Sequence record: NC_027364.1
DNA length: 64,000 bases
Reading direction: 5' to 3' (one strand)
The position numbers and the translations under genes were made by a program. Below the pieces are notes generated by a model. That model was not told the DNA's origin. It searched no databases and worked only from the letters and a program-made list of their open reading frames with translations. This document shows positions 233 through 63,976 of this stretch, piece after piece (position 1 is the stretch's first letter; every line of letters begins with the position of its first letter).

Positions 233-533
233 TGATCCTCCCTGACATACCTTGTATTAGCTTATCATACATATCGAGCATCACTTTTTGAATACTAATT
301 AGTACTGGCATCGTGCAAATATCAATGTCGTATACTAAGCTGTACTGGAATAATTCATCTTCCTGCATTTGTACTAAATTAGGTAAAAGATAATTGTCTG
401 CCTCTTCATCCTGGTACTTGAAATGCATAACACCATCCTTTTTGTACAAAAGAATGTCAATATCACCCAACTCTTCGGCATAACCAAATATACATATATT
501 AGATGTTTTTGCTATATTAAATTTCATCTCCAC
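216..533 (-). CDS. Hypothetical protein, EExFQYSLV-motif family
   Basis: Contains EDELFQYSLVYD; the same motif is in 831..1226, 1192..1536, 31637..32308, 46081..46743 and 60846..61442. Confidence 0.7.
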   Translation of the reverse strand: MEMKFNIAKTSNICIFGYAEELGDIDILLYKKDGVMHFKYQDEEADNYLLPNLVQMQEDELFQYSLVYDIDICTMPVLISIQKVMLDMYDKLIQGMSGRIIEIDI

Positions 534-769
534 CTCTCTCCGTCAGCACAAGAGTACTGGTACGTTGTCGTTAGGGTAGGGACCATGTTCGTAATGGGCA
601 TGTTGTTAACAATAACCGTAACAGGCATAAGAATCGTCTCTACTCTACTCTGTCCTGTCCTTGTGCAATTCATCTTCTGCATTTCATCTGAATCCATGAA
701 ATACAATACAAATGGTGCAATCCCAAGAACAATACACAAGACGATAAGGAAATTTAAAAAATTTAACAT
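524..769 (-). CDS. Small membrane-anchored protein with two Cys in the soluble part
   Basis: N-terminal hydrophobic helix FLNFLIVLCIVLGIAPFVLYF, then NCT...YSC; lies directly behind the promoter at 801-829. Confidence 0.65.
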   Translation of the reverse strand: MLNFLNFLIVLCIVLGIAPFVLYFMDSDEMQKMNCTRTGQSRVETILMPVTVIVNNMPITNMVPTLTTTYQYSCADGERWR

Positions 770-800
770 AATTTTCTACCCTAATGATTAACGTACAGGT

Positions 801-829
801 ACTATATCAGTAATGAAAAGTACTGTCAA
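801..829 (-). promoter_or_regulatory. sigma70-type promoter TTGACA-17-TATAGT
   Basis: Direct read of the minus strand; an AGTACT overlaps the -35 edge. Confidence 0.75.
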
Positions 830-830
830 G

Positions 831-1536
831 CTAGTATTGCACTGTTCTAATGAAAGTACCTTTACTCATGGATTTAAGCTTATGAACCTCTTCCTGTATA
901 CCCTTGATTAACCCTAAAGGTATAGGTACATCATGTACTAAGCTGTACTGAAAGTATTCTTCTTCAGATAAAGTACTAACATCTGGAACGCCAATTTTAG
1001 TTAGATAATCTTGATGTGTTGACCAATAAATTATATCTTCAGTACTATTGTACTCCCCATATACTGAACAATATTGATGAATATCTTTCCTGTACCCTTG
1101 AGCAATAAAGAACTTATCTACTGCATTACCAGCATTAATAGAATTCACTTCGATTGTCACAGTACTTGAGCTTGTATAACTCTTAATATTATCAGTACTC
1201 AACTGTGTGTTCTTCATAATCACCATTAGGCTCCTGTTTAGATTCTTTCATTAGTACTATCATCTTATGTACTAATGGCATAGGAAACTCTAAATCCCAT
1301 ACTAATGATTCCTGAAAGTATTCCTCTGGTGATAAAGTACTTAAATCTTTAATATCAACGTGCTTGTATATTTTATTTTCGTAATTAACAAATGATATAT
1401 ATAAATCACTAACATAAGAATCATAGGTAATTGTGAATGGCTTACCCTTGTAATCCATTACATCTCTACATAGACTACTTTTGATATATGTATGTTCAAA
1501 TGATTTATATACCTTGAGTTGTATATTAGTTTTCAT
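831..1536 (-). CDS. Two hypothetical proteins (831..1226, 1192..1536), EExFQYSLV-motif family
   Basis: STLSEEEYFQYSLVHD and STLSPEEYFQESLVWD near their C-termini. Confidence 0.7.
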
Positions 1537-4500
1537 ATTTCTCTTTATTAGCTTGTTTGGTTTTATAGTGAATTAAATCTATTAATGTAATCAAGTACAA
1601 CGTCAAATAGTACTCTTGTTGATCTGTACCTAATGATACAAAGAACTTGTGCTCATAGATTAAAACCTGTTTCTCTTCAAATGGACATTTAATCCTCTGT
1701 ATAGGCTTAAGTAAATGATAGTACTTATTAAATCTATGATACATTTCTAGTTCTGTCAGTACTTTCATATTAAACATGTACTCCATTAGCAGTAGCATCA
1801 CGTAAAGCTGTCAAATACTTCTGTACGGCTTGCTCTTGCTTATTTGTACCTAAAAGTATATACATCCATAATTCACTGTAATGTACATCTTGTGTATAAG
1901 GGTTGTTGTAACTTTTTGATAATATAGCATCAAATTCAGATGCATGAACCCTTGTGAACTTAAGAATATCTTGTTGTGTTATGATTCTCATATCTTTTCC
2001 TGAACTATCTGCATAAGAATCCCTATGTGTGAATTAACAGTTCTCTCTTGATGCTGTGTTCCTAAGAGTGTCAGTACTATCATCTCTGAACGCAAAAGAT
2101 TTTTTTCAAGTTCACTTATATCAGTTCTTGAATCAAGTGCCATATATTTGTGATTATTCTTCCTGAATAGTGCCAAGTACTCTTGATTTGATATTTCCTT
2201 CATAGTTTATTCCTGATGCCATTTAAAAGTGCTCTAATATGCTCATTGACAAATCGCTCTTGGGAATCTGTTCCTAGAGTGAGTAGCAATCTTAAATCTG
2301 AACTTTTGATGTGATATTCTAAATCATTCTTTGATTCTTGCATCAGTTTCTTAAAGGATGAGAAGTTTGCAGCCATTAGTTCAATGTATTCTGCTGTTCC
2401 TAGGGGTTTGTGTGTGTGCTGTCTGTGCATTTTAATTGTATTACCCTTTTGAGTGTATTAATGTAATTATACACATTGGCTTCTTGATAGTTTGTTCCTA
2501 GAGTAGCTTGAACGTAGATTTCATTTAACTTAATAATTTTATCAGTATCTGGAAGTTTTGATGTGTTAATGGCAAATAACTTCGAAAACAGTCCATTTAT
2601 GATTGTTAGGTATTCTACTTCGGTAATGATTCGCATTTGCATTGGATAAACCTTTTTAGTTCATTGATGTAATCATTAATATTGCATTCTTGATAGTTAG
2701 TCCCTAGTGTAGCTTGAACATAGATTTCACTTACTAGAATACTTATTTCATCATCTGGTAATTTCATGCTTTTTGTTATAAACAGCTTTAGAATTAAACT
2801 ACTTAATAGTTGGTTGTATTCTGTGGGTGAAATGATTTTCATTTGCATTTGCATTTTCTCAGTACTGATTCTTTAAGTTCATTAATGTAGCACTCTACAT
2901 ATTCTTCTTGTAGGTTTGTTCCGATATGTAACAGTACTCTTAAATCTGCTCTCAGTACTTCTTTGTCATCTTCATCTATATCAGACAGTGTTATGTTTAA
3001 GAATTTACTTGAACTCTCTATAAGTAATATTACTGAATCACCTTTGCTTAAAATTTTCATAATCTCTTTTTGCTTTCCTCGCCAAAAGGTACATATACGA
3101 TTCTTCGTATTGTGCTTGGAAGTTTGTGTTTAAGAGTCGAAACAACTTCTGTTCTGCTAGAACGAGTTGCTTATCTTCATAACAACGGTAGCGTATCAAC
3201 TTTTTGTATTCGATGTTGATTACATCCATTACTATAAGTCCATGTTCATCATCTGTCAAGTGTTTCATGCATTTTTTCTTTTTCTTATATGTTTAGTTAA
3301 AAGGTATATTAGTTTTCTGATGTATTCTTCCTGATAGTTTGTTCCTAGGAGTGCAAGAAGTTTTGCTTCAACTAAAGCTAATTGACGTTCTTCGAATGTG
3401 TGTTCCAGTATGTACTTGGGGTTTGATTTTTTAGAAATTGCACTATTAGTTTTCATTACAATCGTATGATATTCATTAACTGTTAGGATTTTTAAATTCT
3501 TGAGCATGTATCTTTTCCTTTATAGAGAATTTAAGATATCGAAGCATACTTTCAATGTAATACTCTTGTCTGTCAGTGCCAAGAAAGTACATGAGTTGAA
3601 TGTATAAAACTTCTGCACTCCTTTCGGCATGTGACTTGTTTGTGTCGTTTGGAAGTTGATTTGTAAGTTTTCTGGATTTAATTAGTCGTTCTTTTAACTC
3701 ATCGTCTGTTAAGTATTTCATTTGCATTTACTTTTTCCTTAATAGTGATTTTAAGATATCTAATCATACGTGCAACATATTCCTCTTGTCTATCAGTTCC
3801 AAGAAGGTATGGTAGTGATTGGAATAAAACTTCTGCACTCCTTTCGGCAGGGGTTTGGTTTAGGTCAATTGGACGTTTATTGGTATATCTCTTGGCACGA
3901 ACTAATCTCTCGACGTATTCATTATAGGTTAAGTATATCATTTCATTTTGCATTTACATTCTCTCATGTACATCCTGGGTTAAAAGATCAATCCAGATTT
4001 CCACATATCGTTGTTGGTGTTGCGTCCCTAATAGTACACCCAACTTAGCTTCACACTCTAATAACAATCTGGTTTTGTATGGTAGACTTTGGAATCCTAT
4101 AGTAGCATCTAATTTGGTAATTGCATAGTTGATTCGGATGAATCTTTCTTGCAATGTGATGTTGATCATTTCTTAGTACACCTCAGTGGTTGGGTCATTT
4201 GATGAAAGTACAGCTTACCTCTGATTTCCAGTAGCAACTCCGCGATTAAGCGATTTACTTCTGTATCTTGATAGTTTGTTCCTAAGAATACACCCATCTT
4301 TAACTCACGCATCATAATCATTTTCTTACTGTGTTGAATTTCTGGGTTGTGATAGATTGTATTACGTTTGTGCGTAATTTTTGTCATACGCTCGGTATAT
4401 TCATCTTTACTTAAATTGATCATTTGCATGTTAATTACCCTTACATTTATTTTCAATACTATTCTTTAGTTTGTAGATATAGTTTTCTTCCAATGTATCT

Positions 4501-7500
4501 CTTAAGTGCGATTATGTATTCATCTACATAATACTCCTGATAGTTTGTTCCTATGAATGCACCCACCTTTAACTCAAGTTTCATAATCATCTTATTTCCG
4601 TGTTTAATGACTTCTCCGTGATGGATTTCATTAAGTCCAGGTGCAATTTTTACCAGGCGTTCTTTATATTTTGCTTGAGATAATTTAATCATTTTCATGT
4701 TAATTACCCTTACATTTATTTTCAATACTATTCATGAGTTCTATAAGATAGTTTTCTACCTTACCTTCCTGATAGTTAGTCCCTAGGAAGTTGCACAACA
4801 CGGCTTCTATGATTTTGATTTTCCTGATATCAGGCTTCAATCTTTTGTTATTGAATATTTGAATCCTTATATCTCTGGATGCATTTAAACGTTTTTGATA
4901 TTCATGGTAAGTTAAATTAATCATTTTCATTTACGTTTAACCTCTCGCTGGAGGGCATCAATTAACATCAGTACAGCATTCTCTTGATAGTTTGTTCCTA
5001 AGACTGAAAGCATCTTTATCTCATTTACTAAAATCAACTTCTTTGAGGGTTCAATAATGTGACTATCATAAACGGCCTTACGTGCTGGATAAGTTTTCGC
5101 CAGTATAACATAAAATTCGTCTTTACTTAAATTAATCATTTGCATTTACTTTTAACCTCTTTCTGTAGAGCGTCAATCCATAGATCTACATACATTTGTT
5201 GATAGTTTGTGCCTAAGAGTGCACCTACATAGAGTTCAGTTACTAGTGCGTGCTTAAGGTTAGCTTGGATGCTCTTATCGCTTGATAAGATTTTCCTTCT
5301 GCTGGTGCATGTTTTCAGGAGTCTGATGTATTCAAAGCCTTGTAATTTTCTCATTCTTTTGATATCACCTTGTTACGTAAGGCACTTAACAATACGTCAG
5401 TGTAGATGTTTTGATAGTTTGTCCCTACGAAAGCACCCAACTTCATTTCAGCTATTATAACACATTTGTCCTCTTGTGCAATAGATTTGTTTAACACAAT
5501 ACTATACACTTTTGATTTGATAGTTTGTAACCTCCAATGATACTGATACTCATTAAGGATTATCATTCTCTTTCCTCCAGATTTCGGTTCTCATGTGTTG
5601 GCAGTGTGCTTCGATGAACATATCTATTGATTTGGCAATTGCGTTTTTATCAGTGCCTGTCATCAGTACAAGCATCTCTGCCTCACTATGAATTAAACGC
5701 ATGATATCATAGGGTAATATTTCAGATACAGTGTCATAGTGTTTCTGTGCCAGTGTCTGCAATAGTTTACAATACATTTTGTGATTTAGTCTTTGTCGCA
5801 TTGTTTATTCCATTCTTTTTTGGCTCTATGGGTTTTATATTGGATTTGGTTTCTCAATGCTGCCAGGTATCGTAGAATGAACAGTTCTTGATAGTTTGTT
5901 CCAATGAATTTCATAAGATAAACATCACCGTTGATAACATCCAATTCAGGTGCACCATGTAATGTATAGTTTTTTCTAAGGGTGTTAAGAATAGAGAAGA
6001 GGGCGGTTTGATACTCAGAGCTTGATAAAGTTTTCATATTTTTCCACAATTCGTTCATTTAGTTTTATCTGTATAAGATCCATTAGTTGTTCAAGATAAT
6101 CGGTACAATATTTCTCTTGATATTGGGTTCCCACAAAGTACAGCAACCATAGCTCATGAACTTTAACTTTCATCTCGTTCCATGAAAGTGCATCGTCATC
6201 GTAGATTACTCTTGCTTCTGGGGTGAGCTTTCGAATTCTAAGTGAATATTCATCGTTCGTCAAGTGTTTCATTTACATTTATCCCTTATTAGATTTGTGA
6301 GTGCAACTATGTGTTCATGGATATAAAAATTCTGATGAGAAGTTCCAAGAAAGTACAACATCCCTCCCTCACTCTGCTCGACTTCTAGTTTAGTATCGAG
6401 TTGGTCAGATATGTTAATGAAAACCATTAGTTCTTTTCCTTTCTTTCTATTTGTTTCATAAGAACATTGATATACTCACCCGCAAACCTATTCTGATACT
6501 GCGTCCCCATGAATTCCAACATCCATACTTCAGCAACCTTTTCTTCAATTTCAGTCCATTGTAAGTACATCATAGTGAAGTAAATGGTGTTCTCTTTTTT
6601 TCTGGCACTCTTAGCACGGGCCTCGTATTCAAAGTTATTAATGATGTTCATTACATTTGTCCATAATGTAATTCTTGAGTGCAACTATGTGTGCAATAAC
6701 ATACTCTTCCTGGAAGTTCGTCCCCAGTACAGCCATCATGCGTTTATCGGTGGTGTTTATCCTGTGTTCCCTTACACATAAACCTTCTTTGTGAGGAAGT
6801 GTAAAATATTTGTTTATTGCAGCAACGATAATTTTATTCTTCTCGGAGTTACTTAAATGTTTCATAGTTTACTCCTGATATAATTCTGAAGTGCAATTAA
6901 GTATTCCCCTACATAATACACCTGAAAGTCTGTATCAAGGAATGCACCCATAAGTAAATCTTTTTCTAATACCCTTGATAAGTTAAGGTCTGCATTTGAA
7001 AGGTATATAAGTAAGATTTCACCCTGTGCGGAATTGAAACGTTTCTTATATTCTTCTGGTGTTAAAAAAATCATAATTTGCTCCTGATATATTTCTCAAG
7101 AGATGACAAATACTTTTCCTCATAATACTTCTGATAGTCTGTTCCTAAGAATGCACCCAATAGTATATCATTTTCCAATACCTCGGCTAAGTTTAAATCA
7201 GAAGTCTCTTCGTATATTATGAGGATTTCAAGTTGTCTGGCAGCGATGCGTTCAGTATATTGATATGAGTTTTCTATAATAATCATAATTTACTCTTTAT
7301 ATCTTGAATTAAAAATCGAATCCATTCTTCAACATAATCTTCCTGATGGTTTGTGTTCAGTACAGCCAACATGCGGATCTCTGCTCTTGCAACTTCAATT
7401 TCAGTTTTAGGAAGGTCTTTGCTGATATCCACCATTAAGTCCATGTATTTCAAGATAAGACCGTATGATTGGGTTCGTGTTATAGTTTTCATTGTTTCCT

Positions 7501-7883
7501 CGTGGACAATATTTTATTTTTCAATGTATCCATATATTGAATCACCCATCTTTCCTGATAGTTAGTTCCCAAAGTAATCAAAAGGTATAACTCCATTCGT
7601 TCTACGTGTGTGTCTGTATTATAAATCTTTGTGAAGTTTTTACGTAACAGTGATTGATATTCTTCTTTATTTAAAATACGCATTTTCATAGTTTACTCGT
7701 TATATCTTCAATTAAATACCAAATCCAATCGTTGACATACCTTTCCTGAAAGTTAGTTCCAATGAATAGTGCCATAATTAATTCACGCTTATAGGCAATA
7801 CCACGGTCATGGGACTTATACATTATCATAGCCATGTTATTGATAAGTCTTTCGTGGTGCTGTTCTTTAGTTAAAATACGCAT
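1526..7883 (-). CDS. Tandem array of 29 paralogous 52-96 aa proteins with a (L/F/I)GT(N/D/Q)(Y/F/H)QE motif
   Basis: The motif is visible in every consecutive ORF from 1526..1801 to 7686..7883 (most divergent: 5553..5801). Many junctions are overlapping ATGA stop/starts. One promoter upstream at 7918-7946. Confidence 0.9.
6269..6427 (-). CDS. 52-aa array member missed by the ORF track
   Basis: Manual translation MVFINISDQLDTKLEVEQSEGGMLYFLGTSHQNFYIHEHIVALTNLIRDKCK; fills the gap exactly and has an ATGA overlap. Confidence 0.8.
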   Translation of the reverse strand: MVFINISDQLDTKLEVEQSEGGMLYFLGTSHQNFYIHEHIVALTNLIRDKCK

Positions 7884-7917
7884 AGGATAAAATCCATAGG
7901 TTCATATGTGAAAAAAC

Positions 7918-7946
7918 ATCATACCCCATGTGAGGCATGATGTCAA
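7918..7946 (-). promoter_or_regulatory. sigma70-type promoter TTGACA-17-TATGAT driving the LGT array
   Basis: Direct read; ~35 bp upstream of the first array ATG. Confidence 0.8.
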
Positions 7947-7969
7947 GATGTTTTGTTCATATAAATGCA

Positions 7970-8335
7970 TTATACTTCAAATGAAATATTCCCAGTAGCA
8001 CGTGAGTCTTTACAATTCTCAATAGTAGTACATCCCAATTTTTGTATTTCACGTACCAATTCAATAGGAAGTTTAAAATCCCATTTCTTCGCTTCTTTTG
8101 CGAACGCTTTCTCGGACAGTACAACTAAGTTTTTTATACGAATCAATGAATAGATATCTGCATATTGATTTTCATCAATAGAAAATACCATTTCGTTATT
8201 GTTGCTAACAACTGATACAAGGGTGTCAGGTGCTTCAGTGATATCAGCAATGAATGATTTTATAGTAGATGTAGGTTTAAAAAACAACCATTCTACATTA
8301 AAGGAAGTACCACATTTATTAGATGATGGATTCAT
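7970..8335 (-). CDS. Hypothetical protein
   Basis: 121-aa ORF with a GAGG RBS upstream; no recognisable motif. Confidence 0.6.
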   Translation of the reverse strand: MNPSSNKCGTSFNVEWLFFKPTSTIKSFIADITEAPDTLVSVVSNNNEMVFSIDENQYADIYSLIRIKNLVVLSEKAFAKEAKKWDFKLPIELVREIQKLGCTTIENCKDSRATGNISFEV

Positions 8336-8618
8336 AGTTCGGTGACCTCTAAAGTTGAGTTAATGTAACTAACATATAAAATATGAATGAAATATAATAT
8401 AGACTATATATTATCAGAATTATATAAAAAGTCAAGCCCCTATCACTCCTTTTTTCGAAGTCGCTAAGGTTACCCGCCCTTTAGCCCCCTACGCATTTTG
8501 CCATAGTCCAATCCCTTTTATTTCAAAAAAGTCAAGGGATTACCTATGCATTTTTTTAACGCATAATTTTAAAAACGCCTTGACTTTTTTCTGAATCAGT
8601 ACTAGATCCCTTTACGCA

Positions 8619-49225: not shown

Positions 49226-49254
49226 TGGAAATCCTCTGATATTAAACTTCTGTT

Positions 49255-49283: not shown

Positions 49284-49290
49284 TATTGAA

Positions 49291-50061: not shown

Positions 50062-50137
50062 TTCGTTATCCTCATCAGTTGATGAAATAATTATAGCAAA
50101 AAGGGCTGACCGAAGTCAACCCTTTTTATAAACATAT

Positions 50138-50464: not shown

Positions 50465-50484
50465 TTTAATTAACCTCTTTTGTT

Positions 50485-52278: not shown

Positions 52279-52340
52279 ATTGTATTCCTCATTTTCTTTG
52301 TTACATGATACTGAAAGATAAAACTGGTGTCAATGTTTTT

Positions 52341-52775: not shown

Positions 52776-52842
52776 GTATTCATCCTCTCGTTTCGATGAA
52801 ATGATTATAGCAAAAAGGGCTGACCGAAGTCAACCCTTTTCT

Positions 52843-53485: not shown

Positions 53486-53674
53486 ATTAATAAGAATCAG
53501 ATTCCCAGTACTCGATTGCTTCTTTCAGCAATTCTTTAGCACGTTGTTTTGCAATGCGAGCGGGAAACTGATATGTGTACATTAACTGACGCTTCACTTC
53601 ATTCAGTGAAAGCTGTTCATGGTACAGTGCATCCATCAGTCGATTACGAGTACGTAGTTTCATATAAGTTATCC

Positions 53675-54940: not shown

Positions 54941-54949
54941 ATATGTCTC

Positions 54950-55985
54950 CTATCGATTCGGCATATTCTTTCGTAGTCGCAAGAGAAATTCAACCACTGA
55001 CCATGTTGTAATGAAGGCTATATAAGTTGCAAGGAATCCAGTAAGAATAAATGCAACCAGCGTACTACCATTTGGGGAATCAGTTTTAATGCCGATGACA
55101 CCATCGGCTACAGTGAAACATGTAGCCATTAATGTGTAACCTACGTACAACACAAAGAAAAACTCATTCTCCATTGAAGGATAGAAACGGTTAAACACTT
55201 TATAAAATTTAAAGTACAGTAGGATTATACCAACAAAGGCATAGAATGTAAACAGTGTTGTTATAATATATGAGATTAGGTTCAAATTATACATATCAAC
55301 GCTCCGGTAGATTATCACGTAATGTTTTAATTCGATGATACATTTTCATACCAATATTACCAAAGATACCATATCCAAGTACTAAAATGTATGCAATAAG
55401 CATAGTAATAATTACTATAGTGCCAAAACTATAATGTACACTACTGATACCCATTGTAGTTTCAACGATTATTTGAGAAACTGAAAGAATCAAAAGTACA
55501 ACTACAATTGGATGATTTGGGTACATTCGGTTGAACAACGTTTTGTACTTAAAGAAGCACAGTACTCCACCGAATAAGAAGTAAACAATGTAAATGCAAG
55601 CAACAGCATAGGCAAACATGTTAGTGTAATAAATCATTACCAATCCTTACTTTTCAGGGATATTAGAACGCCATATATCAATGCGATGAACTAGTCCAAA
55701 GAACAACCATACTGGAACGGCAGCTATCATAACAACAAATGAAAACCCAGTCAAGACCGATACCAGATTTAATTCATCAGTACTATACCCACATATCAGT
55801 ACTTCTAATATTCCCCACGTACATGCACAAAACATCAAGAATGAAATTGGGGCATCATAGTAGATACGTTCATATAAAGTAGTGTATCGGAAGAATGCAA
55901 TAATGTAGCAAAACATATAATACACCCAAACCAAAGATACTACATAAAATGATACTTTGTTTATTAATTCAAAATATTGTTCCAT
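54950..55985 (-). CDS. Three more ~3-TM membrane paralogues (54950..55294, 55296..55643, 55647..55985)
   Basis: Shared YxxxxxRxYP/Y after TM1 and C-terminal RxN(M/L/I)P(N/E)(R/K), similar to 48540..48887 (LRNKIPEE). Confidence 0.75.
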
Positions 55986-56331
55986 TTTTACCCCAATATA
56001 TATTCAGAGAGTAATGTATTAGCTTCATCTTTGTTCTTAAGGTAATACATGTAATATAGATTCGGTTCACCATCTTTAGCACTCAAATCGAAGTACTTTA
56101 AACTATGTACTTTCATAGTAAAAACAAATAATGACTTAAAACCAATCTCACCGTACTTAATAAACAGTTCATCCAAATGAATGTAACTTTTTGATTTGGA
56201 TAATTCTTTAACGTCTGCATCAATTTCAGATAAAAGATGCTTACCTATTAAGTTTTCAAATGAACGCATGATTTTTATCCTTTACCGCAATTTTTATGGT
56301 TTATTAAGAATACACCAGAATATCAGTTCTG

Positions 56332-56973
56332 TCAATAAAAAACTGGATCTTCTTCAGTAATTGGTATTTCTCTACGTACATCACACGAAAGAGGATCAGT
56401 AATGAATACATTCCCATCTTTATCCATCATCACATTACTTGAATGAATGTCTGGTACAAAACGCCCGTGAAACTCTTTCATGATGTTAGCAGCGACCGTC
56501 GCAATAGCAATCTCTTCAGAATTTCCACGCATATCATTCACTGAAGTAGCGTACTGACCAGCATGTGCATAAGAATATAAATCTCCAATTTTAGTACTAA
56601 CAAAGTCATCATAATTATTTTTTTGTTTAATTATAGGATAGTACTTGTCCATCTCATACCATCCAAAGTTTCCTTGTTCGTTTGCACTGTAGATCACTGG
56701 AAGAAACTTGGTTCCTGCGTTTTCAATGCAGTACTTTGCATAAGCACGAAAACCATCCCAGCGTGAAGTGGTTACTTTAAATGCACGCCCAGGATAGTTT
56801 TTATGTTCAACTACTACAGAGTACATCCCCATTCCAAGCAAAGTAAGTCCAGCAGCTTTAACTTGTGGAAAGATTACGCGTTCAGCATAAGGAATATCAA
56901 ACTCCATCGCACAACGAGTTTTTGATGGACGCAAAATGTCAATTAAAGTTTTGAATATTTCTTGCTTAGTCAT
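56332..56973 (-). CDS. T7 gp0.7-like Ser/Thr protein kinase
   Basis: GLTLLGMGMYSVVVEHKNYPGRAFKV, AYAKYC, DIHSSNVMM, FITDPLS parallel T7 0.7 ([42 protein letters not shown]). Confidence 0.8.
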   Translation of the reverse strand: MTKQEIFKTLIDILRPSKTRCAMEFDIPYAERVIFPQVKAAGLTLLGMGMYSVVVEHKNYPGRAFKVTTSRWDGFRAYAKYCIENAGTKFLPVIYSANEQGNFGWYEMDKYYPIIKQKNNYDDFVSTKIGDLYSYAHAGQYATSVNDMRGNSEEIAIATVAANIMKEFHGRFVPDIHSSNVMMDKDGNVFITDPLSCDVRREIPITEEDPVFY

Positions 56974-57042
56974 TACTTTATCCTCTGTAGTTAATATCAA
57001 CATCATAACAAAAAAGGCTGACCGAAGTCAACCCTTTTATTA

Positions 57043-58061
57043 TCATTTACAGTTTTCTATAACTATTGCACGTTTTAGTATTTTACTTTCATAAACATAC
57101 TTAAGATGACCTTCTTCACGAATACGATTGAACACATATCCTAGTTTATCTTTTAGTACTGAAGCGGTATCAATGTCAAGATTAACTTCAACCCCTCCTG
57201 TTAATTTAACTTTATATGTAAAGCTAAAAGCATCACCAGATTCAACCAATGGGACTACTTGTTCATACGTATTCAACATAACTCGTTCATCATTAACTAA
57301 ATTATATATTACTATATCACAAGTTTTTACCCCAATTTCCTCTAATGTAGGAGCATTATCTACTATAACATCTTTTACTGTATTTGCAACCTGTTTAGCA
57401 TCTGCTGCATATACATTAAAACTAAAAAGTACTAAAATAATACTTAAAAAAATACTTTTTCTATTATATATCCTTATTTTATTTTACATGTCATATCGGG
57501 TTGTGCTGGTTTATTATTTTTAAACGGATTAGGTTTTTTATTCTTTCTTTTTATCTTTTAAAGGTTTTTTGTCTTCTTTTTTATTCTTTATCTTTGTCTT
57601 TTTTATTTTTATCAGGTTCAGAGGGAGTATTACATTGTGCTGGGGGTTGATTAGTTGGAGTACAGCTATTGTCTGATGGGAGTATTACTTCTTTACAATT
57701 GTAAAATAGTAAACTTTTATTTGTGGTTAAATTATGAAAACGATAGTTACGTTCATTATTATAATAAATTGTTTTAGTACTTTCAATGTCATTGCACATT
57801 GCTACTGAATCACCGGAACTCTTTTTCTATTCCCATTACATCAGTCTTACGCTCAGATAGTATACCTGAAGTATATGAATCTTTGTTGTCAAACGCATTA
57901 AATCCAATAGTTCTGTCGGTGTCGTGTATTATTCCTTTTGTGTATGAGGTAGTATAGAACTCCCCATTTCTGAAATCCTGCCTTGCTACTGAGCAATGAT
58001 AATCTGCACCATAAGCAGTACTGGAAAATAATACAATTCCAAATATAATATATTTTTTCAT
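57043..58061 (-). CDS. Two exported proteins, apparently broken by frameshifts or an uncertain start
   Basis: 57810..58061 has a signal peptide and continues in another frame into 57581..57799. The frame of 57043..57279 is open upstream to ~57460 with a signal-like ILVLFSFNVYA. Confidence 0.45.
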
Positions 58062-58132
58062 TGTAATCCCTCTTCTTAATTCCTCTTTTGTATTTACAAA
58101 AAAAGGCTGACCGAAGTCAACCTTTTAAATGT

Positions 58133-59644
58133 TTATTTTTTATCCTTTCCAACACCACTGTCGTACTCTTTGAATGAGTTATCAAGTGTAGTTAGTGCAT
58201 ACTCATATGCTTCTGGTGATTCAATGTCAACATCATCTGCACCATTTACTAAATCAGCCCACGCCTTTTGAAGTTTACGAGCATTGTTACCAACATTATC
58301 TTTAATCCAACTAATGTTTTTGTTGATACTTTTACGATCAGCACCTGCTTTTTTGCCAATCTCGGATATCCACATCATTAGCTTTTGAAGTTCATGAATT
58401 GATTTATCGGTCATTTCAAGATGTTCTTCTTCCATACCTTCGGAATCAGATGAACCAACGTCAATTCCATGTTTAGCTAATAGTTTACCAAGTTCAAAGA
58501 ATGCAGCTTCAGCAGGGAAGTCATAACCTTTCTCTTTGTAGTTATTCCATGCACTATCAAACTCGTCAACAAAACGGTTAGCATAATCTGGATTTTTAAC
58601 TAATGCTTTATATACTGCAATTGCATGTTCAAAACCTTCTTTATCTGACCCAAACTCTTCCATCTCAGGACGATGAATGTATCCATCCATATCAACGGTA
58701 TCAGGTAGTTCTTCTTGCTCAGGCTCAACATCTTTCTGTTCAACTGCACCCTCTTCATCTGCACGCTTTAGATAACCATCTGGTGTTACCTTCTCACCAT
58801 GTTCTGCTTCATACTTTTTCATAGTGTTGAATGCAGCATCCATAGCTGTTACGAAGCGACTTTTCTCACCTTGTACATAAGATTTAAGTGCACTGTTAAC
58901 TGCATCTGATACGAGCTTAACCTTATCGTCTTTACCTTCTAAACGGTTTTCAAGTTTAGCCAGTACATTCTTGACTTGCTGGGCATTAGCACGGTCCGCT
59001 TTACCAATATTATCAAAAGTTTTAAGAATACCATCAAGACTTGCTTCACCCTGTTCAGGTTCTTTGGAATCTTCTTTGTGTGTACCTTCAAGTGCACGCA
59101 TGATAGTACTGAATACTTCAGTTGGTTCAGTGCTCTTATTACCTTTCATTACATCAAGTACAGCTTGTGCTTTACCTTTGAGTTCTTCTTTAGGAACTGC
59201 CTGTAGTGCTTTGACAATACCCTGAATCAACTGTGGTTTGTTAGCAAAGATCTTACCTAAGTTATCTGATAACTCTTTAACAGGGTTAGCAGCTTTAGGT
59301 ACTTCTGCTTTTGGTTCTTCTTTAGGAACTGCTTGTTCTTTCTCAGCACGTTCCATATCAGCTAGGCGTTGTTTTTGTGTAGCATTAAGAAGTCCCAATG
59401 AATTAACATAACGTAGCTTTTCTAGCTCAGTCATGTTCTCAGTACTCTTAACTTCACCTGCTTCTGCGTTTGCTTTACCAGCTAGACCAGTTCCTTGGTT
59501 ACGTGACCCACGTGAACCTTGACCTGCTTGATAACTATTTGGACGGCGGTTGCGTTCACTCCATTTATCAGAGTGACCAGCCATGTTACCACCATTTTTA
59601 TCAGTAAAATTACTTGGCATTTGATTTCTCTCCATAGATTTCAT
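58133..59644 (-). CDS. Large acidic/charged late protein, candidate virion internal protein
   Basis: TATAAATA late promoter at 59662-59669; E/D/K-rich and helical; likely start at 59620 or 59584. Confidence 0.6.
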   Translation of the reverse strand: MKSMERNQMPSNFTDKNGGNMAGHSDKWSERNRRPNSYQAGQGSRGSRNQGTGLAGKANAEAGEVKSTENMTELEKLRYVNSLGLLNATQKQRLADMERAEKEQAVPKEEPKAEVPKAANPVKELSDNLGKIFANKPQLIQGIVKALQAVPKEELKGKAQAVLDVMKGNKSTEPTEVFSTIMRALEGTHKEDSKEPEQGEASLDGILKTFDNIGKADRANAQQVKNVLAKLENRLEGKDDKVKLVSDAVNSALKSYVQGEKSRFVTAMDAAFNTMKKYEAEHGEKVTPDGYLKRADEEGAVEQKDVEPEQEELPDTVDMDGYIHRPEMEEFGSDKEGFEHAIAVYKALVKNPDYANRFVDEFDSAWNNYKEKGYDFPAEAAFFELGKLLAKHGIDVGSSDSEGMEEEHLEMTDKSIHELQKLMMWISEIGKKAGADRKSINKNISWIKDNVGNNARKLQKAWADLVNGADDVDIESPEAYEYALTTLDNSFKEYDSGVGKDKK

Positions 59645-59889
59645 TTTTTTCTCTATGTCTATATTTATAGTATAAAGAAAAGGCTGACCGAAGTCAACCT
59701 TATTTTGTTACTTAGATTGTTCTTGTGCAGGTGGATTTACTTTTTGATCCACTACATAGAATACACCACCAACCAGTACTGCGGCGATGAGTGCAGCAAC
59801 TACAAATTTTAAACCTTGCATATATGATACCTCAGTTATATTGAGAAGTTATGATACAACAAAGGGCTGACCTTAGTCAACCCTTTTTA

Positions 59890-60273
59890 TTACTTCTTGA
59901 ACTTATGTTTTTCACTTTCGATTGCATTCACGATTTCATCATGAATTTTACGAAGATTGTGAGTTTTCTTGAGAGAATCATGCAATGCACGGAATGCAGA
60001 GTGTACAGTTGCTTTAAAGTGCTCTTTAGGAGTTACTTTAAGTTTCTCGATAATATCACGTACATAGATTGGGTGATCCTCAAACACACGATTAAGCTCA
60101 TGACCTAGTGATTCTAGGCTAAATGCTTTTTCACGGGATGGACGATCATGTGCAAGACTTTGGTCTGGTTTTAGAAGACCTAGTGAATCTAGATACTTGT
60201 GCTTATGTGCATTGTCTAGACCAGAAATATCAACATCATGTGATGGATCTTTCTTATTCCATTTATCAACCAT
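59890..60273 (-). CDS. Late protein, candidate virion internal protein
   Basis: TATAAATA at 60310-60317; shares DKW and Y(L/V)xSLGLL with 58133..59644. Confidence 0.6.
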   Translation of the reverse strand: MVDKWNKKDPSHDVDISGLDNAHKHKYLDSLGLLKPDQSLAHDRPSREKAFSLESLGHELNRVFEDHPIYVRDIIEKLKVTPKEHFKATVHSAFRALHDSLKKTHNLRKIHDEIVNAIESEKHKFKK

Positions 60274-60388
60274 TTTTATAACTCCTATAAGAGATAAATT
60301 TTACTATAATATTTATAGTTCCGTTGTCATTTATATCGAATGACATAAAACATTATATCATAATAAGAATGGTTGTCCCAAAGTTAAA

Positions 60389-62631
60389 TTAGTACTGACC
60401 AAGTTCAGATGTAAAAATAAATGCATCCATGTCTTCCAACGTAAGTTTTAAGTCTGGTACATACTTAAGAATAACGCACTCTGGCTTCTTAATAGCAGCT
60501 TGATAAGCAGCAATGGCAAGGGATTCCAATTGCTGTGCTGTATAATTTTTACGTTCTGCATTAAAAACTTTGTTTTTGATATCACCACCTGGGAGTTTTT
60601 CAAACTCACGCATAACTGCGGTAAGAACATCGTCAGCAGTGTTACTATATACCCATTGGGGTAATTGCATTACATTATAAATCACACCACTATCATCCAT
60701 CAAAGAGATCCATTTGTACCCATCACTAGCACTGAACAAACGCCCTTTTAGTACTGTGTTATTAGTTAAATTTACAAATGCAAAAATATCTTGTTCGTTA
60801 AGTTCAATACTATTAACATTTACCCAACTCATTACGATTCCCCATTCATAAATCACGAACAATATTCATTAAACACAATTTAGGTTTTATAGCATTCAAC
60901 ACCCATATGCATTCTTTGTAAGTAGCTATTATATCATCTAAATGCTCAGTTACAATGCTTTCTTGAAAATATTCTTCATCATTGAGCTTTGCTAATTTAG
61001 TAACATCACACGTAGGCACTATAGGTCTGGATTGTACACCCATTCCATTATTGATATTAGTGAAATGTACAAAATGGTACTTCACTACACCTTTATCTAG
61101 ATTTATTATACATGACAAATTTTCCAACTCAGTTAGTTTTTTATTACAAGTAACATTAATGAAACCAGCATTATAGGCTCTATAATCATCTACTGATATC
61201 TCAAAATCATTACGTTCAAATATAAGTGAAATGAGTTGGTCCAGTGGTTTGACATTCATATATTTTAATGAATTTACGTATGATACTTCAATCTTAGATG
61301 AAATTATCTTTTTACTAAGTGCAGTTAAATCTTTGTTAGATTTAACTGTTAAAACAATAGGTTTAAACCTAGAACTTTTGTTCTTTTTTGATACTTTAAA
61401 ACGACCTTTACGATTCATAATTTCCTCAATTAATAATTTCACATTTAACGTGTGGTTTATATAGCATAATTAACCCATTTTTAAGTACAATGATTGTTGC
61501 TCTGTTAGTAATCGAAACGTTTTTAATTATACTTTTTTTATATGTTTCAACATATTTCTCTTCATAATTTATACATTTAACATATTCTTTTTGTTTAGCA
61601 CTTACAACAGTACTGAATAATATCAGTACAAGTACTATATATTTCATTACTATACCTTATAAACAAAAAGGAATTCATTTAAGAATTCCTATTTTACAAT
61701 CATTTATCTAACATACCATTGTGCAAACGTTCATATACTTCAGTTCGACGCAAATTAACAATATCTTCTGCGTATTTTAATGTAAATGCCCATGCTTTTG
61801 GATGTACGTTAAGCTTCATACGAATTCGATTTTTCATCAACTCTCCACTTAAACGAATAAATTCGTGTACACCACGACTACCGTATTCAGTAATTAAATC
61901 ATTAATGTACATATCACGAAGAGTTTCATCTGCACATTCTTTAACCATTTCTACGTCAGCGACGATGCTTTCATTAACTGAAGTACTGATCATTTTTAAT
62001 TTACCTTATTTAAATTCGACTGTAATTTTATCACCTTCAACTACGAACTTACAGTTGTAGCGACGTGCCATATCCATGTACATATGCTCAGAGTACCAAG
62101 GAACATCAATAATCGGATGCTCTGCATATTGTAAAACTTCACGGTCGCCCACTGTAGTAATGATGAAAGGAATGTTCATCTCTCGTAAAAACAGTTCAGC
62201 ACCAGGAGAACGATTAATAAATTCAGTATCATTACGTAAAGTAAATCCATTATATTGTAATTTAAGCTTCATATGTTATCCTCTATTCAATACCATTCTT
62301 TAAAACCATTAAGTTCGGCTACGTGAGTGATTATAACACATATAACATTCAGGTCAAGTATAATTTGATCATAATTTAATTTTATACGATCATCATTATA
62401 TGCTCTAAAAACTACATCGTAATCAAAGAAATTTGCGTTTTCATCATTCATTGAAACGATTCGGTATCTACGTCTTCCATCTGTATTGAATATAGTTAAA
62501 CACTGTTGAAACTTTCTCATTAACTGTTTAGATAGGATATTATAATATTCAATATCTTTTTGTGAATTACGTGGGTCATCAGGAAGATAGAATGAAACAA
62601 ATTTCTTTAATTCTATTTGAGTTTTATCCAT
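60389..62631 (-). CDS. Run of hypothetical proteins (60389..60832, 60846..61442, 61426..61647, 61700..61993, 62006..62272, 62287..62631)
   Basis: Consecutive ORFs. 60846..61442 has LNDEEYFQESIV; 61426..61647 has a signal peptide and two Cys. Confidence 0.65.
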
Positions 62632-63064
62632 ATATTACCTCATTTGTTTCTCTTTTACTTTGTCGGAACTCATCCTTTGCTTCCTTAACTGACATGATAC
62701 GAACTAATTTAGCACTACCGCAATAGTACTGAACCTGATTACGACCAATGTCTACATGGTGGTCTGGAACTTCATATACAGATATAGCAAACCCAGCACG
62801 ATGCAATTTACCTAAGTCCATAGTGAAGAATCTGAACAAATCTTTCAAACTTTGACAGCCAAATACCCATCCACTTTTGATTGAATAAATCCCATCCTCA
62901 GTTGGTTCAGGTTGGAATTGAGAAGGTGTAGTCATGAGCAAACGGTCAAATCCATTTTTAGTACTGTATCTGGTTGAATACCGTGCAAACGGACCTACAG
63001 TTCGTGCAGGATCTAAGTTAGGTTCAATGTAACTAAATTTAAGTTCAAAACGATATACATACAT
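62624..63064 (-). CDS. Conserved-type phage hypothetical protein (YRxE..GP..PEP..D..FGxxS..F..GF..YEV)
   Basis: Motif order resembles a widespread phage family; function not established. Confidence 0.55.
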   Translation of the reverse strand: MYVYRFELKFSYIEPNLDPARTVGPFARYSTRYSTKNGFDRLLMTTPSQFQPEPTEDGIYSIKSGWVFGCQSLKDLFRFFTMDLGKLHRAGFAISVYEVPDHHVDIGRNQVQYYCGSAKLVRIMSVKEAKDEFRQSKRETNEVIYG

Positions 63065-63118
63065 AATTAAAATCCTCTAATTTATTAAGAGAATTATAAC
63101 AAAAAAGGCTGACCGAAG

Positions 63119-63976
63119 TCAACCTTTGTTTTGAAGTTCTTGAACTAATTGTCGTACTTCGTTAATATTTTTACACTGCTTTACAGTGAAGTAATCATAC
63201 TTACGACCATAGGTTCTTGGGTCATCACCTTCCATATACTGCTGCACATCAAAGATTTGTAAGTAGGGATGCTGCATAACACGAATATTATCACTTTGAT
63301 AAATCAACATAATATCAATCCTTATATTTACACAAGCCACCAAAACTAGTTTCTTTAGCACCACGACGCATCATAACTAATTTAGCATATTGTGTGCCAT
63401 TACTATCTTCATATACATCTACTTCAATAAACGCTAAGAAGTTAGGGTCTGTGTCGTTAGAAAACTCAGTGAAGCTAATGTCGCCTACTGTATGCTCTTT
63501 AACAAACGTATATGATTGTCCATCAATATATACAATATCTCGATCGTCACTATCACCTTGATAGATATGTTTAATATTACCATCTGTACAAACTAAACCT
63601 TCCAATGGTTCAGCATATGACAATCCACACATTAACATACATACAAAAAATAAAATAATTTTCATGATTATTTTCCTCCAACGTTAAGTGATTTCTTGTA
63701 CTGATATTCTTTATAAGTACTATACCATATATCACCAACGTAAATCAAGTACCACGTAGCAGGATAAAGAGCCAATCCAGTACTGATGTATACGAACTTT
63801 TGGTCAAGGACATCAAATACATACAGAAGGAAAGTTACTCCCATAATGCAAGAACAAATTAACCACAAGTTATAAGCAATCGAATCGCAAGCAAAAATAG
63901 AATCAAGCTTAGAAATTAGGACATATTTGTTTGTTAAAATGAAATGAATTACTGCAACTAAACAATATCCTGCCAT
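63119..63976 (-). CDS. Three small genes: 63119..~63310 hypothetical, 63315..63665 exported protein, 63668..63976 membrane protein (likely starting beyond the window)
   Basis: Signal MKIILFFVCMLMCGLSYA with terminal Cys pair; hydrophobic stretches in the last ORF. Confidence 0.6.

Follow-up and report, generated by a model that had tools for sequence, protein, structure and literature searches.

The hexameric palindrome AGTACT occurs 269 times, between positions 301 and 63784, in a 64-kb stretch of Escherichia phage PBECO4 (positions 124001-188000, hereafter the window), where 22 copies would be expected, a 12.4-fold excess. One hundred dinucleotide-preserving shuffles of the window yielded 22.1 +/- 4.5 copies, with a maximum of 35. 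Across the whole 348-kb genome, 891 copies stand against 100 expected (9-fold), a spacing of one per approximately 0.4 kb. The word appears to be an iterated palindrome maintained by selection and specific to the RaK2/GAP32/121Q jumbo phages (~350 kb), and its likeliest explanation is a phage-encoded, twofold-symmetric DNA reader, either a binding protein or a methylase, that would mark phage DNA and control early promoters. No earlier description of AGTACT hyper-abundance was found in the literature. A first-pass annotation, made from the sequence alone, had reported the over-representation in weaker form; its twelve copies at 301-1758 and its eight in 10201-11000 (10238, 10298, 10437, 10550, 10572, 10652, 10714 and 10889) are all correctly placed, and its expected rate of one per 2.9 kb agrees with the shuffle mean. 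Markov expectations of orders 2 to 4 for the window (48, 102 and 216) climb because the sub-words AGTAC and GTACT come with the motif itself.

The core hexamer is sharply defined. None of its one-mismatch neighbors exceeds 2.2 times expectation (observed/expected, or O/E, 0.56-2.2), and the deamination-type neighbors AGTATT and AATACT show no depletion (O/E 1.22). The best extended form, and probably the optimum, is CAGTACTG, with 55 copies in the window (62-fold); in non-coding DNA the preference seems to lengthen to TTCAGTACTGAA, of which the window holds seven copies. Flanks are symmetric, as expected from dyad recognition of duplex DNA. Terminator stems built from the motif, which the first-pass annotation had proposed, turn out to be incidental: pairs 8-16 bp apart number 21 against 20.3 expected, and two-copy hairpins, such as that at 46760/46770, are only occasional. 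As the ScaI site, AGTACT belongs to the classical type II targets, and the rest of the PBECO4 genome shows textbook avoidance of such targets, with 24 other palindromic hexamers absent from the window and GCGC found 0 times against 180 expected in the whole genome. AGTACT has thus been selected in the direction opposite to the usual phage avoidance of palindromes, much as had been suggested by analogy to cyanobacterial HIP1 (Highly Iterated Palindrome 1, GCGATCGC), and its enrichment amid purged palindromes points to a putative phage-encoded system reading this word.

Of the genome's copies, 81% are intragenic. The signal resides in DNA rather than protein, as the first-pass annotation had argued from the use of different frames. 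All three reading frames are used, and the 171 in-gene copies in the window compare with 54 +/- 6 (maximum 71) under synonymous-codon shuffling and 24 +/- 5 under codon-order shuffling, so that the codon-aware correction the annotation had suggested leaves a 3- to 7-fold excess. PBECO4 proteins are bent to carry the word. Ser-Thr dipeptides, at 672, exceed the expected 467 by 44%, while the reverse dipeptide Thr-Ser numbers 470; 52% of Ser-Thr dipeptides are spelled AGT-ACT, a codon pair found 351 times against 101 expected. Val-Leu is similarly inflated and its reverse is not, and Tyr is encoded by TAC in 79% of cases in the context AG-TAC-T, compared with 27% elsewhere. An artefact of codon or dipeptide usage is excluded.

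Density differs greatly among blocks of the window, as follows.

2960..8597, minus strand: AGTACT-free island, 0 copies
8475..29442: equivalent of the direct terminal repeat (DTR), with early genes, 130 copies (6.2 per kb), the densest large block of the genome
27768..29442, minus strand: non-coding stretch of ~1.7 kb located at the left physical genome end, 17 copies (10 per kb)
29443..36809: right-end unique block of tiny genes, 43 copies (5.8 per kb)
33841..46100, plus strand: array of ten RCC1-repeat paralogues, 36 purely coding copies (2.9 per kb)
46101..64000, minus strand: minus-strand genes, 55 copies (3.1 per kb)

The DTR equivalent was placed by mapping onto the DTR of fEgEco12 (1-20993), which has been confirmed experimentally (PMC13070987). 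Exactly at its boundary, density drops from 4-10 per kb to 0; the island, ~25 tightly packed paralogous genes of ~70 aa lying immediately within the inner DTR boundary, acts as a built-in negative control. Many copies in the non-coding left end carry longer symmetric flanks (TTC-AGTACT-GAA). The same stretch also holds iterons and an inverted Chi pair, and the ~75 tiny genes of the DTR are orphans. The right-end unique block adjoins the other DTR copy in the real genome. Because copies in the RCC1 array are purely coding, enrichment holds also in long plus-strand genes. Genes in the last block include the HNH endonuclease gp306, DenV-like gp309, the kinase gp319 and virion proteins, and their promoters are mostly of a hairpin-embedded type that lacks AGTACT. 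Outside the DTR, spacing is slightly more even than random (CV 0.87-0.89), and outside both DTR and island no gap exceeds 2.1 kb.

Within the sigma70-type early promoters of the DTR, AGTACT occupies two fixed registers, starting either 7-8 nt or 27 nt upstream of the -10 hexamer; the two are 20 bp apart, on the same helix face. Representative promoters, together with one promoter-like spacer outside the DTR, are given below.

11746..11773, minus strand: class A early promoter (TTGACA, 9 nt, AGTACT, G, TATAAT), with AGTACT at 11753-11758, or -19 to -14 from the start
26306..26338, minus strand: class B early promoter (A-tract, AGTAC, TTGCAA, TATAAT)
18130..18165, minus strand: two-site early promoter, with AGTACT at 18160-18165 and 18138-18143
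49250..49283, minus strand: promoter-like spacer, with AGTACT at 49257 and 49273

The window contains about 20 class A promoters and about 17 of class B, in which AGTAC shares one base with the TTGCAA -35 hexamer and TATAAT lies 27 nt downstream of the site start. In the two-site promoter, copies 22 bp apart bracket the -35 hexamer. The first-pass annotation had described AGTACT as overlapping or abutting -35 and -10 hexamers, citing two copies in 49255-49283; these do overlap a TTGACA -35 and abut the -10 region, and the general observation is now sharpened by the fixed registers. The registers are confined to early-type promoters, being absent from late, middle and hairpin-embedded types; the promoters that show them have diverse spacer sequences, and the registers are conserved in TH47 and fEgEco12 (a comparison within the genus Asteriusvirus). 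Duplicated promoter cassettes make up part of this signal. The embedding in promoters agrees with the annotation's suggestion of a global promoter switch, but such a switch would account for only ~15% of window copies.

Counts in relatives, another of the annotation's suggestions, show the signature at 5- to 9-fold in every RaK2/GAP32/121Q-type lineage sampled, eight in all, from hosts in Escherichia, Klebsiella, Salmonella, Yersinia, Cronobacter, Pectobacterium and Xanthomonas, and it is present within the single-copy core genes of all eight. The outgroups PA5oct (O/E 0.2) and Phosso (0 copies) lack it. Presence whatever the host, with absence from outgroups, favors a phage factor rather than one from the host. 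When lineages of ~70% nucleotide identity are compared, the retained fraction of sites is 0.38, and that of nearby hexamers 0.17; within the genus the fractions are 0.87-0.92 and 0.64-0.70, and the within-genus excess extends to non-coding copies (p <= 1e-4). AGTACT sites are under purifying selection accompanied by turnover: at either evolutionary depth, they are retained approximately twice as often as the local background, whether the DNA is coding or not. Host-independent distribution across the clade and conservation above background together argue for a phage-encoded reader.

The clade may keep AGTACT because a phage-encoded reader with twofold symmetry recognizes it in double-stranded DNA. 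We tentatively prefer, as a favorite among several candidates, a reader that is a phage-encoded dimeric binder with roles both at early promoters and in marking the chromosome, most likely an abundant small protein. In the first role, the putative reader would occupy strong sigma70-type DTR early promoters at the two registers, from which it could switch them, most simply off after the early phase. In the second, it would decorate the entire chromosome at intervals of approximately 0.4 kb. Since AGTACT is 12-30 times denser in phage than in sampled host DNA (0.22 per kb), phage DNA should be biochemically distinguishable from that of the host, a distinction that would serve protection, compaction or replication and recombination. 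Two features of the word count against a binder: an uninterrupted core of 6 bp whose flanks add little information is seen more typically with restriction-modification enzymes than with helix-turn-helix repressors, and the intragenic majority of copies has no obvious job for a promoter regulator. Palindromes of 8 bp are nevertheless read by ribbon-helix-helix proteins, MetJ being an example. The first-pass annotation had proposed a binding or modification site for a nucleoid, packaging or methylase protein, and the case for a phage-encoded putative reader upholds that idea in part, but the H-NS-like domain it invoked was not detected: Pfam searches found no H-NS-like or other DNA-binding domain in 20 mid-sized window proteins, nor any DNA-binding domain in the ten genes beside the phage sigma factor. 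That these scans yielded no candidate, that the tiny DTR genes are orphans, and that duplicated cassettes contribute to the promoter signal also weigh against a binder.

A possible though less probable reading makes AGTACT an epigenetic mark, the target of a phage orphan methyltransferase, such that the methylated site itself matters rather than a bound protein, although a reader protein would be compatible with it; the mark might tune early promoters, or it might distinguish parental from new DNA or the DNA of the phage from that of the host. Methylases and restriction enzymes typically recognize a sharply defined, uninterrupted palindrome of 6 bp, 891 ScaI sites would leave the genome very exposed unless protected, and methylation-dependent function is documented for HIP1, with its orphan methylases (PMC4390886, PMC13756078). 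A candidate, though no more than compatible, is gp148, a Dam-family N6-adenine methylase (PF05869) with syntenic orthologues in Asteriusvirus, EJP2, 7t3/PHA46, K64-1, Yersinia, Erwinia, CBB and XbC2, that is, in every AGTACT-rich lineage listed, and with Pseudomonas absent from the organisms listed as hits, though the database has 11 PA5oct-like records; yet it is small (173 aa), has no evident target-recognition domain, and has homologues spread among many unrelated small phages. The C5-methylase gp416, closest structurally to DNMT3, M.HaeIII and M.HhaI, is a poor candidate, with homologues 51% identical in rV5/phi92-like phages but none from the Erwinia Eneladusviruses, an AGTACT-rich genus, among the matches listed. 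No cognate AGTACT restriction enzyme is recognizable, and fEgEco12 DNA is cut normally by ten enzymes, none of which reads AGTACT (PMC13070987). Protection, moreover, lifts only counter-selection, leaving the 9- to 12-fold excess and the per-site purifying selection unexplained. We consider it unlikely that AGTACT is instead the place where an enzyme of the phage acts to cut or nick DNA or to begin its synthesis (a nickase or endonuclease seeding recombination-dependent replication and concatemers via the terminal repeats, clamp-loading, or a primase start), with selection keeping at least one site per 1-2 kb on either strand. The even genome-wide spread fits, a palindrome works on both strands, density is highest in the terminal repeats, which must recombine, and the phage has T4-like recombination and replication genes plus several HNH and GIY-YIG nucleases. 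Homology blocks with intergenic ends finish within 10 bp of AGTACT in 54% of 13 cases, compared with 26% for random intergenic positions, but this breakpoint signal is weak, confounded with promoters, and only 29% overall. No nuclease of this specificity is identifiable, gp306 resembling the usual HNH enzymes of homing type; the words read by known primases are 3-5 nt long, not hexameric palindromes; and the fixed promoter registers are left unexplained.

The remaining explanations have very little probability. A host factor that the phage recruits or titrates, such as a component of RNA polymerase or the nucleoid-occlusion factor SlmA, whose consensus GTGAGTACTCAC contains AGTACT as its core, would suit the many copies inside sigma70 promoters, where the 3' T plus a flanking G can give an extended -10 TG. 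The flanks preferred by SlmA are avoided, however, 12 of the 269 copies having G at -1; for GAGTACTC, 4 occurrences compare with 2.7 expected, and for the full SlmA 12-mer there are 0; most copies are intragenic; and phages of Xanthomonas, Yersinia, Pectobacterium and Escherichia bear the same signature. Least credible is a functionless neutral by-product of codon or dinucleotide bias, repair drive of the Dcm/Vsr type, cassette amplification, or squeeze from palindrome avoidance. Some promoter copies are indeed paralogous duplicates, word avoidance is extreme, and a C5-methylase is encoded, but the neutral reading is largely refuted by codon-aware shuffles, site retention, the neighbor words and the one-directional dipeptide inflation, and enrichment in single-copy core genes of eight lineages also opposes it. 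In E. coli, Dcm/Vsr very-short-patch repair produces a methylase-linked rise of its own target, but that rise is small and depletes the T-for-C neighbor, whereas here the neighbor is kept and the excess is 9- to 12-fold.

Among known systems, Noc with its NBS, SlmA with SBS, MatP with matS and ParB with parS all use dispersed palindromes at which a dimeric protein marks or organizes a replicon, and TF1 of SPO1 is an abundant phage DNA-binding protein with preferred sites overlapping strong early promoters in the terminal redundancy. These systems have tens of sites of 12-16 bp, compared with ~900 AGTACT sites of 6-bp core. PeSLs (promoter-early stem-loops) of T4-type phages are composite promoter-terminator modules that flank orphan genes in hyperplastic regions (PMC2839356, PMC4122927). 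The window has a similar arrangement, each tiny early gene being preceded by a conserved sigma70 promoter and a GC stem-loop, and a second PeSL-like class in which the -35 hexamer is embedded in a terminator hairpin; PeSLs account for the repeated promoter modules, but not for 7-fold in-gene, genome-wide enrichment that includes single-copy core genes. The closest analogue is HIP1. The two differ in sequence and length (8 bp, compared with a 6-bp core), in carrier (a cellular phylum, compared with a virulent phage clade) and in enrichment (15- to 300-fold, compared with 9- to 12-fold for AGTACT and 62-fold for its 8-mer); AGTACT peaks in the DTR early region with fixed promoter registers, whereas no gene-regulatory role has been found for HIP1, and the HIP1 periodicity of 10-90 kb is hardly applicable to a 348-kb phage genome. 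Proposed HIP1 roles are nucleoid structure and DNA recognition. Both are short, hyper-abundant palindromes that occur outside genes as well as within them and use every reading frame, and HIP1 genomes, like PBECO4, encode orphan methyltransferases, which in the case of HIP1 methylate its internal sequences (PMC4390886, PMC13756078). Both words are also conserved between genomes above background (for HIP1, PMC5861425), which indicates that they are kept by selection rather than by neutral replenishment.

The palindromic hexamer AGTACT, the ScaI site, occurs 269 times in the window, against 22.1 +/- 4.5 (maximum 35) in dinucleotide-preserving shuffles, and 891 times in the whole genome against 100 expected, an enrichment of about 12-fold in the window and 9-fold in the genome. 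The over-representation claimed by the first-pass annotation survives composition-corrected counting and extends to relatives (observed/expected ratio, O/E, 5.4-9.1), and all the positions it quoted for the word were correct on recount. Every 5-kb bin of the genome holds at least four copies. AGTACT is the sole enriched palindromic hexamer in the window, the excess of GTAC lies almost wholly within the AGTACT context, and all nine classes of one-mismatch neighbor show O/E of 0.56-2.2, compared with 8.9 for the exact word genome-wide. The flanks extend the word weakly and symmetrically, with C preferred and G avoided at -1, and T preferred at -3/-4. An extended form, CAGTACTG, has 55 copies in the window (62-fold) and 191 in the genome, where 4.4 are expected; a longer form, TTCAGTACTGAA, is mainly non-coding and occurs 15 times in the genome against 0.05 expected. 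Orientations are balanced (CAGTACT 127, AGTACTG 115), and motif and flanks alike are symmetric. The palindromic core and symmetric flanks point to twofold-symmetric recognition of duplex DNA.

Avoidance of other words is extreme. In the window, 24 palindromic hexamers that contain G or C do not occur at all. Across the 348 kb genome GCGC is absent (180 expected), as is GGTACC (32 expected), and GGCC, CCGG and GATC are depleted (O/E 0.43, 0.49 and 0.61, respectively).

The enrichment is not a by-product of protein coding. By our own ORF calls for the window, 171 copies lie within genes, using all three reading frames, where 54 +/- 6 are expected from shuffling synonymous codons within each gene and 24 +/- 5 from shuffling codon order; the excess remains, therefore, after the codon-aware correction called for in the first-pass annotation. 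Across the genome, 672 Ser-Thr dipeptides occur where 467 are expected, compared with 470 of the reverse, Thr-Ser; the spelling AGT-ACT accounts for 52% of Ser-Thr (351 against 101 expected). Val-Leu dipeptides number 744 against 542 expected, and the Tyr codon is TAC in 79% of AG|TAC|T contexts versus 27% elsewhere. The shuffles, together with this context-specific codon choice, rule out a codon, dipeptide or dinucleotide artefact: proteins are bent, genome-wide, to carry AGTACT. Although 723 of the 891 genomic copies fall within ORFs, density is higher in intergenic than in coding DNA, at 8.2 versus 3.3 per kb in the window and 4.2 versus 2.3 per kb (1.8-fold) genome-wide.

The same terminase-centered stretch, ~25 kb long except in the Klebsiella phage (about 43 kb), was compared across lineages of the clade of RaK2/GAP32/121Q-type jumbo phages, and AGTACT is the top palindrome in each of the eight lineages sampled.

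AGTACT O/E in the terminase-centered stretch
PBECO4: 5.5
EJP2: 7.7
Klebsiella RaK2-type phage: 9.1
Salmonella Munch: 5.4
Yersinia fHe-Yen9-04: 6.9
Cronobacter GAP32: 8.4
Pectobacterium CBB: 7.0
Xanthomonas XaC1: 7.7

The signature is absent from the outgroups, Pseudomonas PA5oct (O/E 0.2) and Sinorhizobium Phosso (0 copies). Palindromes absent from the sampled stretch number 19-30 in all AGTACT-rich relatives versus 11 in the outgroups. That one word recurs in phages of such varied hosts speaks in favor of a phage-encoded cause.

In codon alignments of 19 core-gene families from the eight lineages (18 kb, 63-71% nucleotide identity to PBECO4), AGTACT occupies 144 alignment positions, 78 of them unique to one lineage and four common to all eight. 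Retention at the same position between lineages is 38%; nearby hexamers, at a distance of 9-30 nt, reach 17%, and control words range from 6 to 33%. In lineages lacking a site, the amino acids usually differ as well (689 versus 115). Within the genus, at ~90-92% identity, window sites are kept in 87-92% of cases versus 64-70% for other hexamers, an excess that holds for coding and non-coding DNA separately (p <= 4e-4). Retention above background, combined with lineage-unique sites, indicates purifying selection on individual sites and continual creation of new ones. The same pattern of site selection and turnover has been reported for HIP1, the hyper-abundant cyanobacterial palindrome (PMC5861425).

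Base for base, the window matches positions 124001-188000 of Escherichia phage PBECO4 (NC_027364 / KC295538). PBECO4 is an Asteriusvirus, a jumbo myovirus of ~348 kb in the RaK2/121Q/GAP32 group. The window is organized as follows.

Gene blocks and arrays in the window
First ~33 kb, minus strand: about 75 tiny genes with sizeable spacers
2960-8597: AGTACT-free island adjoining the inner repeat boundary on its inner side; ~25 paralogous genes of ~70 aa, closely packed and in many cases overlapping
29706-31434, minus strand: nine ~60-aa paralogous genes in tandem ~190-bp units, several beginning MHKEYY, with AGTACT near unit junctions
33841-46100, plus strand: ten RCC1-repeat (beta-propeller) paralogues in a row; the window has no other long plus-strand block
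After 46.1 kb, minus strand: remaining genes, including an HNH-type endonuclease, a DenV-like glycosylase, a protein kinase and virion proteins

The related phage fEgEco12 has a direct terminal repeat of 20,993 bp, confirmed by PhageTerm and restriction digests (PMC13070987). When the window is aligned with the left end of fEgEco12, the physical left genome end falls at ~29,442 and the inner boundary of the repeat at ~8,475. The PBECO4 record is permuted, with its repeat collapsed, and window positions 8475-29442 correspond to the ~21 kb repeat of fEgEco12. This terminal-repeat equivalent carries 130 AGTACT copies (6.2 per kb), and its non-coding terminal 1.7 kb (27768-29442), with no ORFs of at least 60 aa on the gene strand, carries 17 (10 per kb). 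Genome density peaks at 5-8 per kb at genome positions 135-160 kb, inside the window, and falls to 1-2 per kb in late and structural regions. For E. coli K-12, 50 kb of sampled sequence gave 0.22 per kb, making the phage 12-30 times denser.

In fEgEco12, AGTACT runs at 4-10 per kb across the repeat and then at zero for 5 kb from the boundary on, a stretch equivalent to the AGTACT-free island of the window. All 34 Asteriusvirus records that match carry this island (34/34), so recent import of foreign DNA is ruled out; most simply, the island is an amplified array of one site-free gene unit.

Other repeated words mark the terminal region. On the minus strand of 27768-29442, direct repeats (GGCTARAYG at 28572-28628, GGATGGCT at 28600 and 28608) look like iterons of a putative origin or packaging site. 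For the E. coli Chi octamer, GCTGGTGG, 22 genomic copies compare with an expectation of 2.5, and window copies lie at 9835, 11635, 13039, 15338, 16606, 17651, 21807, 21862, 28853, 28858 and 54781. Ten fall within the terminal-repeat equivalent, where one orientation predominates, with an inverted pair ~0.6 kb from the physical end; these Chi copies may protect against RecBCD.

Spacers in the window, read by eye, contain sigma70-type promoters with near-consensus hexamers and AGTACT at fixed places. Class A, as at 11746-11773, consists of TTGACA, 9 nt, AGTACT, G or GG, and then (T/C)ATAAT, an arrangement in which the final T of AGTACT and the flanking G can double as the TG of a predicted extended -10 element. 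Class B, as at 26306-26338, consists of an A-tract followed by AGTAC sharing one base with a TTGCAA -35 hexamer. AGTACT starts cluster at -7/-8 and at -27 from the first base of the -10 hexamer, 20 bp apart, and both registers are kept in TH47 and fEgEco12, within the Asteriusvirus comparison. Some promoter cassettes are duplicates, but the spacer sequence surrounding the site varies from promoter to promoter, and paralogy is therefore not the whole explanation of the register. About 40 of the 269 window copies are promoter-borne. The first-pass annotation had noted that the word overlaps or abuts promoter hexamers; this stands, and the registers are fixed in early-type promoters only. Near hairpin-embedded promoters there is no fixed register, nor is there one near the T4-like late motif TATAAATA or near promoters of the TGAAACG type, which have been described for CBB and GAP32 (PMC5259590).

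Spacing between copies shows a single excess, at 20-23 bp (25 versus 13.5), which arises because some promoters carry both sites; the local spacing CV is 0.87-0.89, and beyond this modest excess from two-site promoters the local spacing gave no sign of helical or long-range periodicity. The proposal that AGTACT forms terminator stems was rejected, close pairs being at no excess. Ends of intergenic homology blocks lie near AGTACT in 54% of cases (n = 13) versus 26% for random positions, a signal both weak and confounded for a role as recombination junctions or for promoter cassettes lying where shuffled modules meet.

The window also contains 12 hairpin-embedded promoters. Their TTGACT -35 sits within the hairpin stem of a GC-rich terminator, a -10 hexamer comes after it, and AGTACT is absent. 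This class is a composite terminator-promoter resembling the PeSLs of T4-type phages. Considered by themselves, the promoter-borne AGTACT copies follow the PeSL arrangement on inspection of 61 spacers: small orphan genes of a plastic region are flanked by a conserved early promoter with its stem-loop.

Hairpin-embedded promoters (first base of the -35 hexamer) and other elements
9943, 12200, 15419, 19039, 50119, 51909, minus strand: hairpin-embedded promoters
52833, 57031, 58120, 59697, 59880, 63122, minus strand: hairpin-embedded promoters
9893, 12145, 18984, 25938, minus strand: ~30-nt conserved element (CCCAYAGGGTGC...GTATC) with no ORF, directly 3' of some hairpin-embedded promoters
23398, 25820, 28070, 28410, plus strand: strong promoter-like sites opposing all neighboring genes, two of them AGTACT class A

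The ~30-nt element may represent a small RNA family; it has no match in Rfam, and no known RNA families or tRNAs were found in the window. Transcription from the opposed plus-strand sites may yield antisense or small RNAs within the terminal repeat. About 18 early transcripts (~10833-27291) share a conserved initiation box, TTTACAT, followed by a 5' GC hairpin (GGGGRR...YYCCCC; about 18 in the window) and then a ribosome-binding site, which looks like a common 5' leader structure as judged from sequence.

The genome has 551 genes and encodes a sigma70-family factor and a late sigma. In the search for a protein that reads AGTACT, 30 of its proteins, 20 from the window and 10 from genes beside the phage sigma factor, were scanned against Pfam; no DNA-binding domain was found in them, and the H-NS-like protein mentioned in the first-pass annotation was not seen among them. 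The HNH endonuclease gp306, the only endonuclease in the window, matches HNH homing-type families, has no PDB sequence match and was rejected as a restriction enzyme. Two methylases are encoded: gp148, a Dam-family N6-adenine methylase (PF05869), and gp416, a compact C5-cytosine methylase (PF00145). Among the matches listed, gp148 has syntenic orthologues in all AGTACT-rich lineages, and Pseudomonas is not among the listed match organisms. This phyletic pattern is compatible with but not specific to a putative AGTACT methylase, and the enzyme is small. By contrast, gp416 is missing for Erwinia Eneladusviruses among the matches listed, though that genus is AGTACT-rich, and unrelated rV5/phi92-like phages carry close homologues of it; among solved structures the nearest to it are DNMT3, M.HaeIII and M.HhaI. 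Phyletic pattern and relatives alike disfavor it as the cause. Virion DNA of fEgEco12 is cut as predicted by ten ordinary restriction enzymes, AGTACT not being among their targets (PMC13070987), which rules out global hypermodification. Published mentions of AGTACT methylation that we found concern the ScaI test site only.

Stated generically, AGTACT is very probably a selected recognition site for a phage-encoded factor. Our best reading, a tentative one, is that an abundant phage-encoded dimeric DNA-binding protein reads the word, both switching promoters and marking the chromosome. Such a protein would sit on early promoters of the terminal repeat at two same-face registers, switching them, and, bound every ~0.4 kb along the whole chromosome, would also label the DNA as that of the phage. 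In the main rival, a methylase would be the reader that matters and its mark would be epigenetic, as for HIP1. Such a rival would be compatible with a binding protein; the distribution of gp148 allows it, and on our analysis it seems unlikely. Less probable again is a nicking, cutting or priming site serving recombination-dependent replication: it accounts for the even spread and the terminal-repeat peak and draws its sole direct support from the weak association with homology-block ends, but the promoter registers do not fit.

Explanations lying outside the phage, or outside selection, fare worse. Reading by a host factor is largely excluded. The site of the E. coli protein SlmA (GTGAGTACTCAC) contains an AGTACT core but needs GTG/CAC around it, whereas G occurs at -1 in 12 of the 269 window copies; the SlmA-type GAGTACTC occurs four times against 2.7 expected, and the full SlmA 12-mer not at all. 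With wrong flanks and a host-independent signature, SlmA or another E. coli factor was rejected. A neutral origin is likewise largely excluded. Inflation by Dcm/Vsr-type repair predicts a depleted deamination neighbor, but AGTATT/AATACT shows no depletion (O/E 1.22); since individual sites are also conserved, repair or mutation drive was rejected.

A broader proposal, possible though doubtful, is that the clade marks its own DNA against that of the host with a genome-wide AGTACT barcode read by a dedicated phage protein, possibly joined by an orphan methylase. About 900-1000 copies per chromosome would serve a clade that has neither a phage nucleus nor global base hypermodification, and they might protect or compact the DNA or serve recombination-dependent replication, in addition to timing early transcription from the terminal repeats. 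If true, this would be a third self-marking strategy in large phages, and a requirement strong enough to have remodeled the amino-acid sequences of hundreds of proteins.

Conservation of the excess throughout the existence of the clade, at a cost in protein sequence, argues for a sequence-reading system of real fitness value. Among the clade and genus papers listed, all from outside the subscription-only literature, no mention of AGTACT or of such a palindrome was found, which suggests that the system is previously undescribed. The reader, if found, could explain discrimination of self from host DNA in jumbo phages that form no nucleus, could explain the switching of terminal-repeat early genes, and could show whether elements like HIP1 are a solution of general use and not just a peculiarity of cyanobacteria. 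In practice, digestion with ScaI or RsaI would be a one-tube diagnostic for the clade if sites are unmodified, and the motif offers a handle for pull-downs and for engineering of therapeutically used phages.

Phages are known for purging restriction-type palindromes; here the purge is extreme, yet one word is raised 9-12-fold clade-wide. A type II restriction target under avoidance should be depleted, and AGTACT is instead enriched while 24 other hexamers stand at zero. Chi and DNA-uptake sequences are asymmetric, orientation-biased words, and AGTACT has no such asymmetry. Transcription-factor operators share with it a fixed promoter position but concentrate in regulatory DNA, as AGTACT does not. 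The closest known phenomenon is HIP1, and the likeness drawn in the first-pass annotation is borne out by the many-fold excess, occurrence in all frames and in non-coding DNA, independence of codon usage and conservation of sites above background. AGTACT shares with HIP1 its hyper-abundance, its presence in coding and non-coding DNA, and its selected sites; it differs in sequence, in its carrier, a clade of virulent phages, in its promoter registers and in its terminal-repeat peak.
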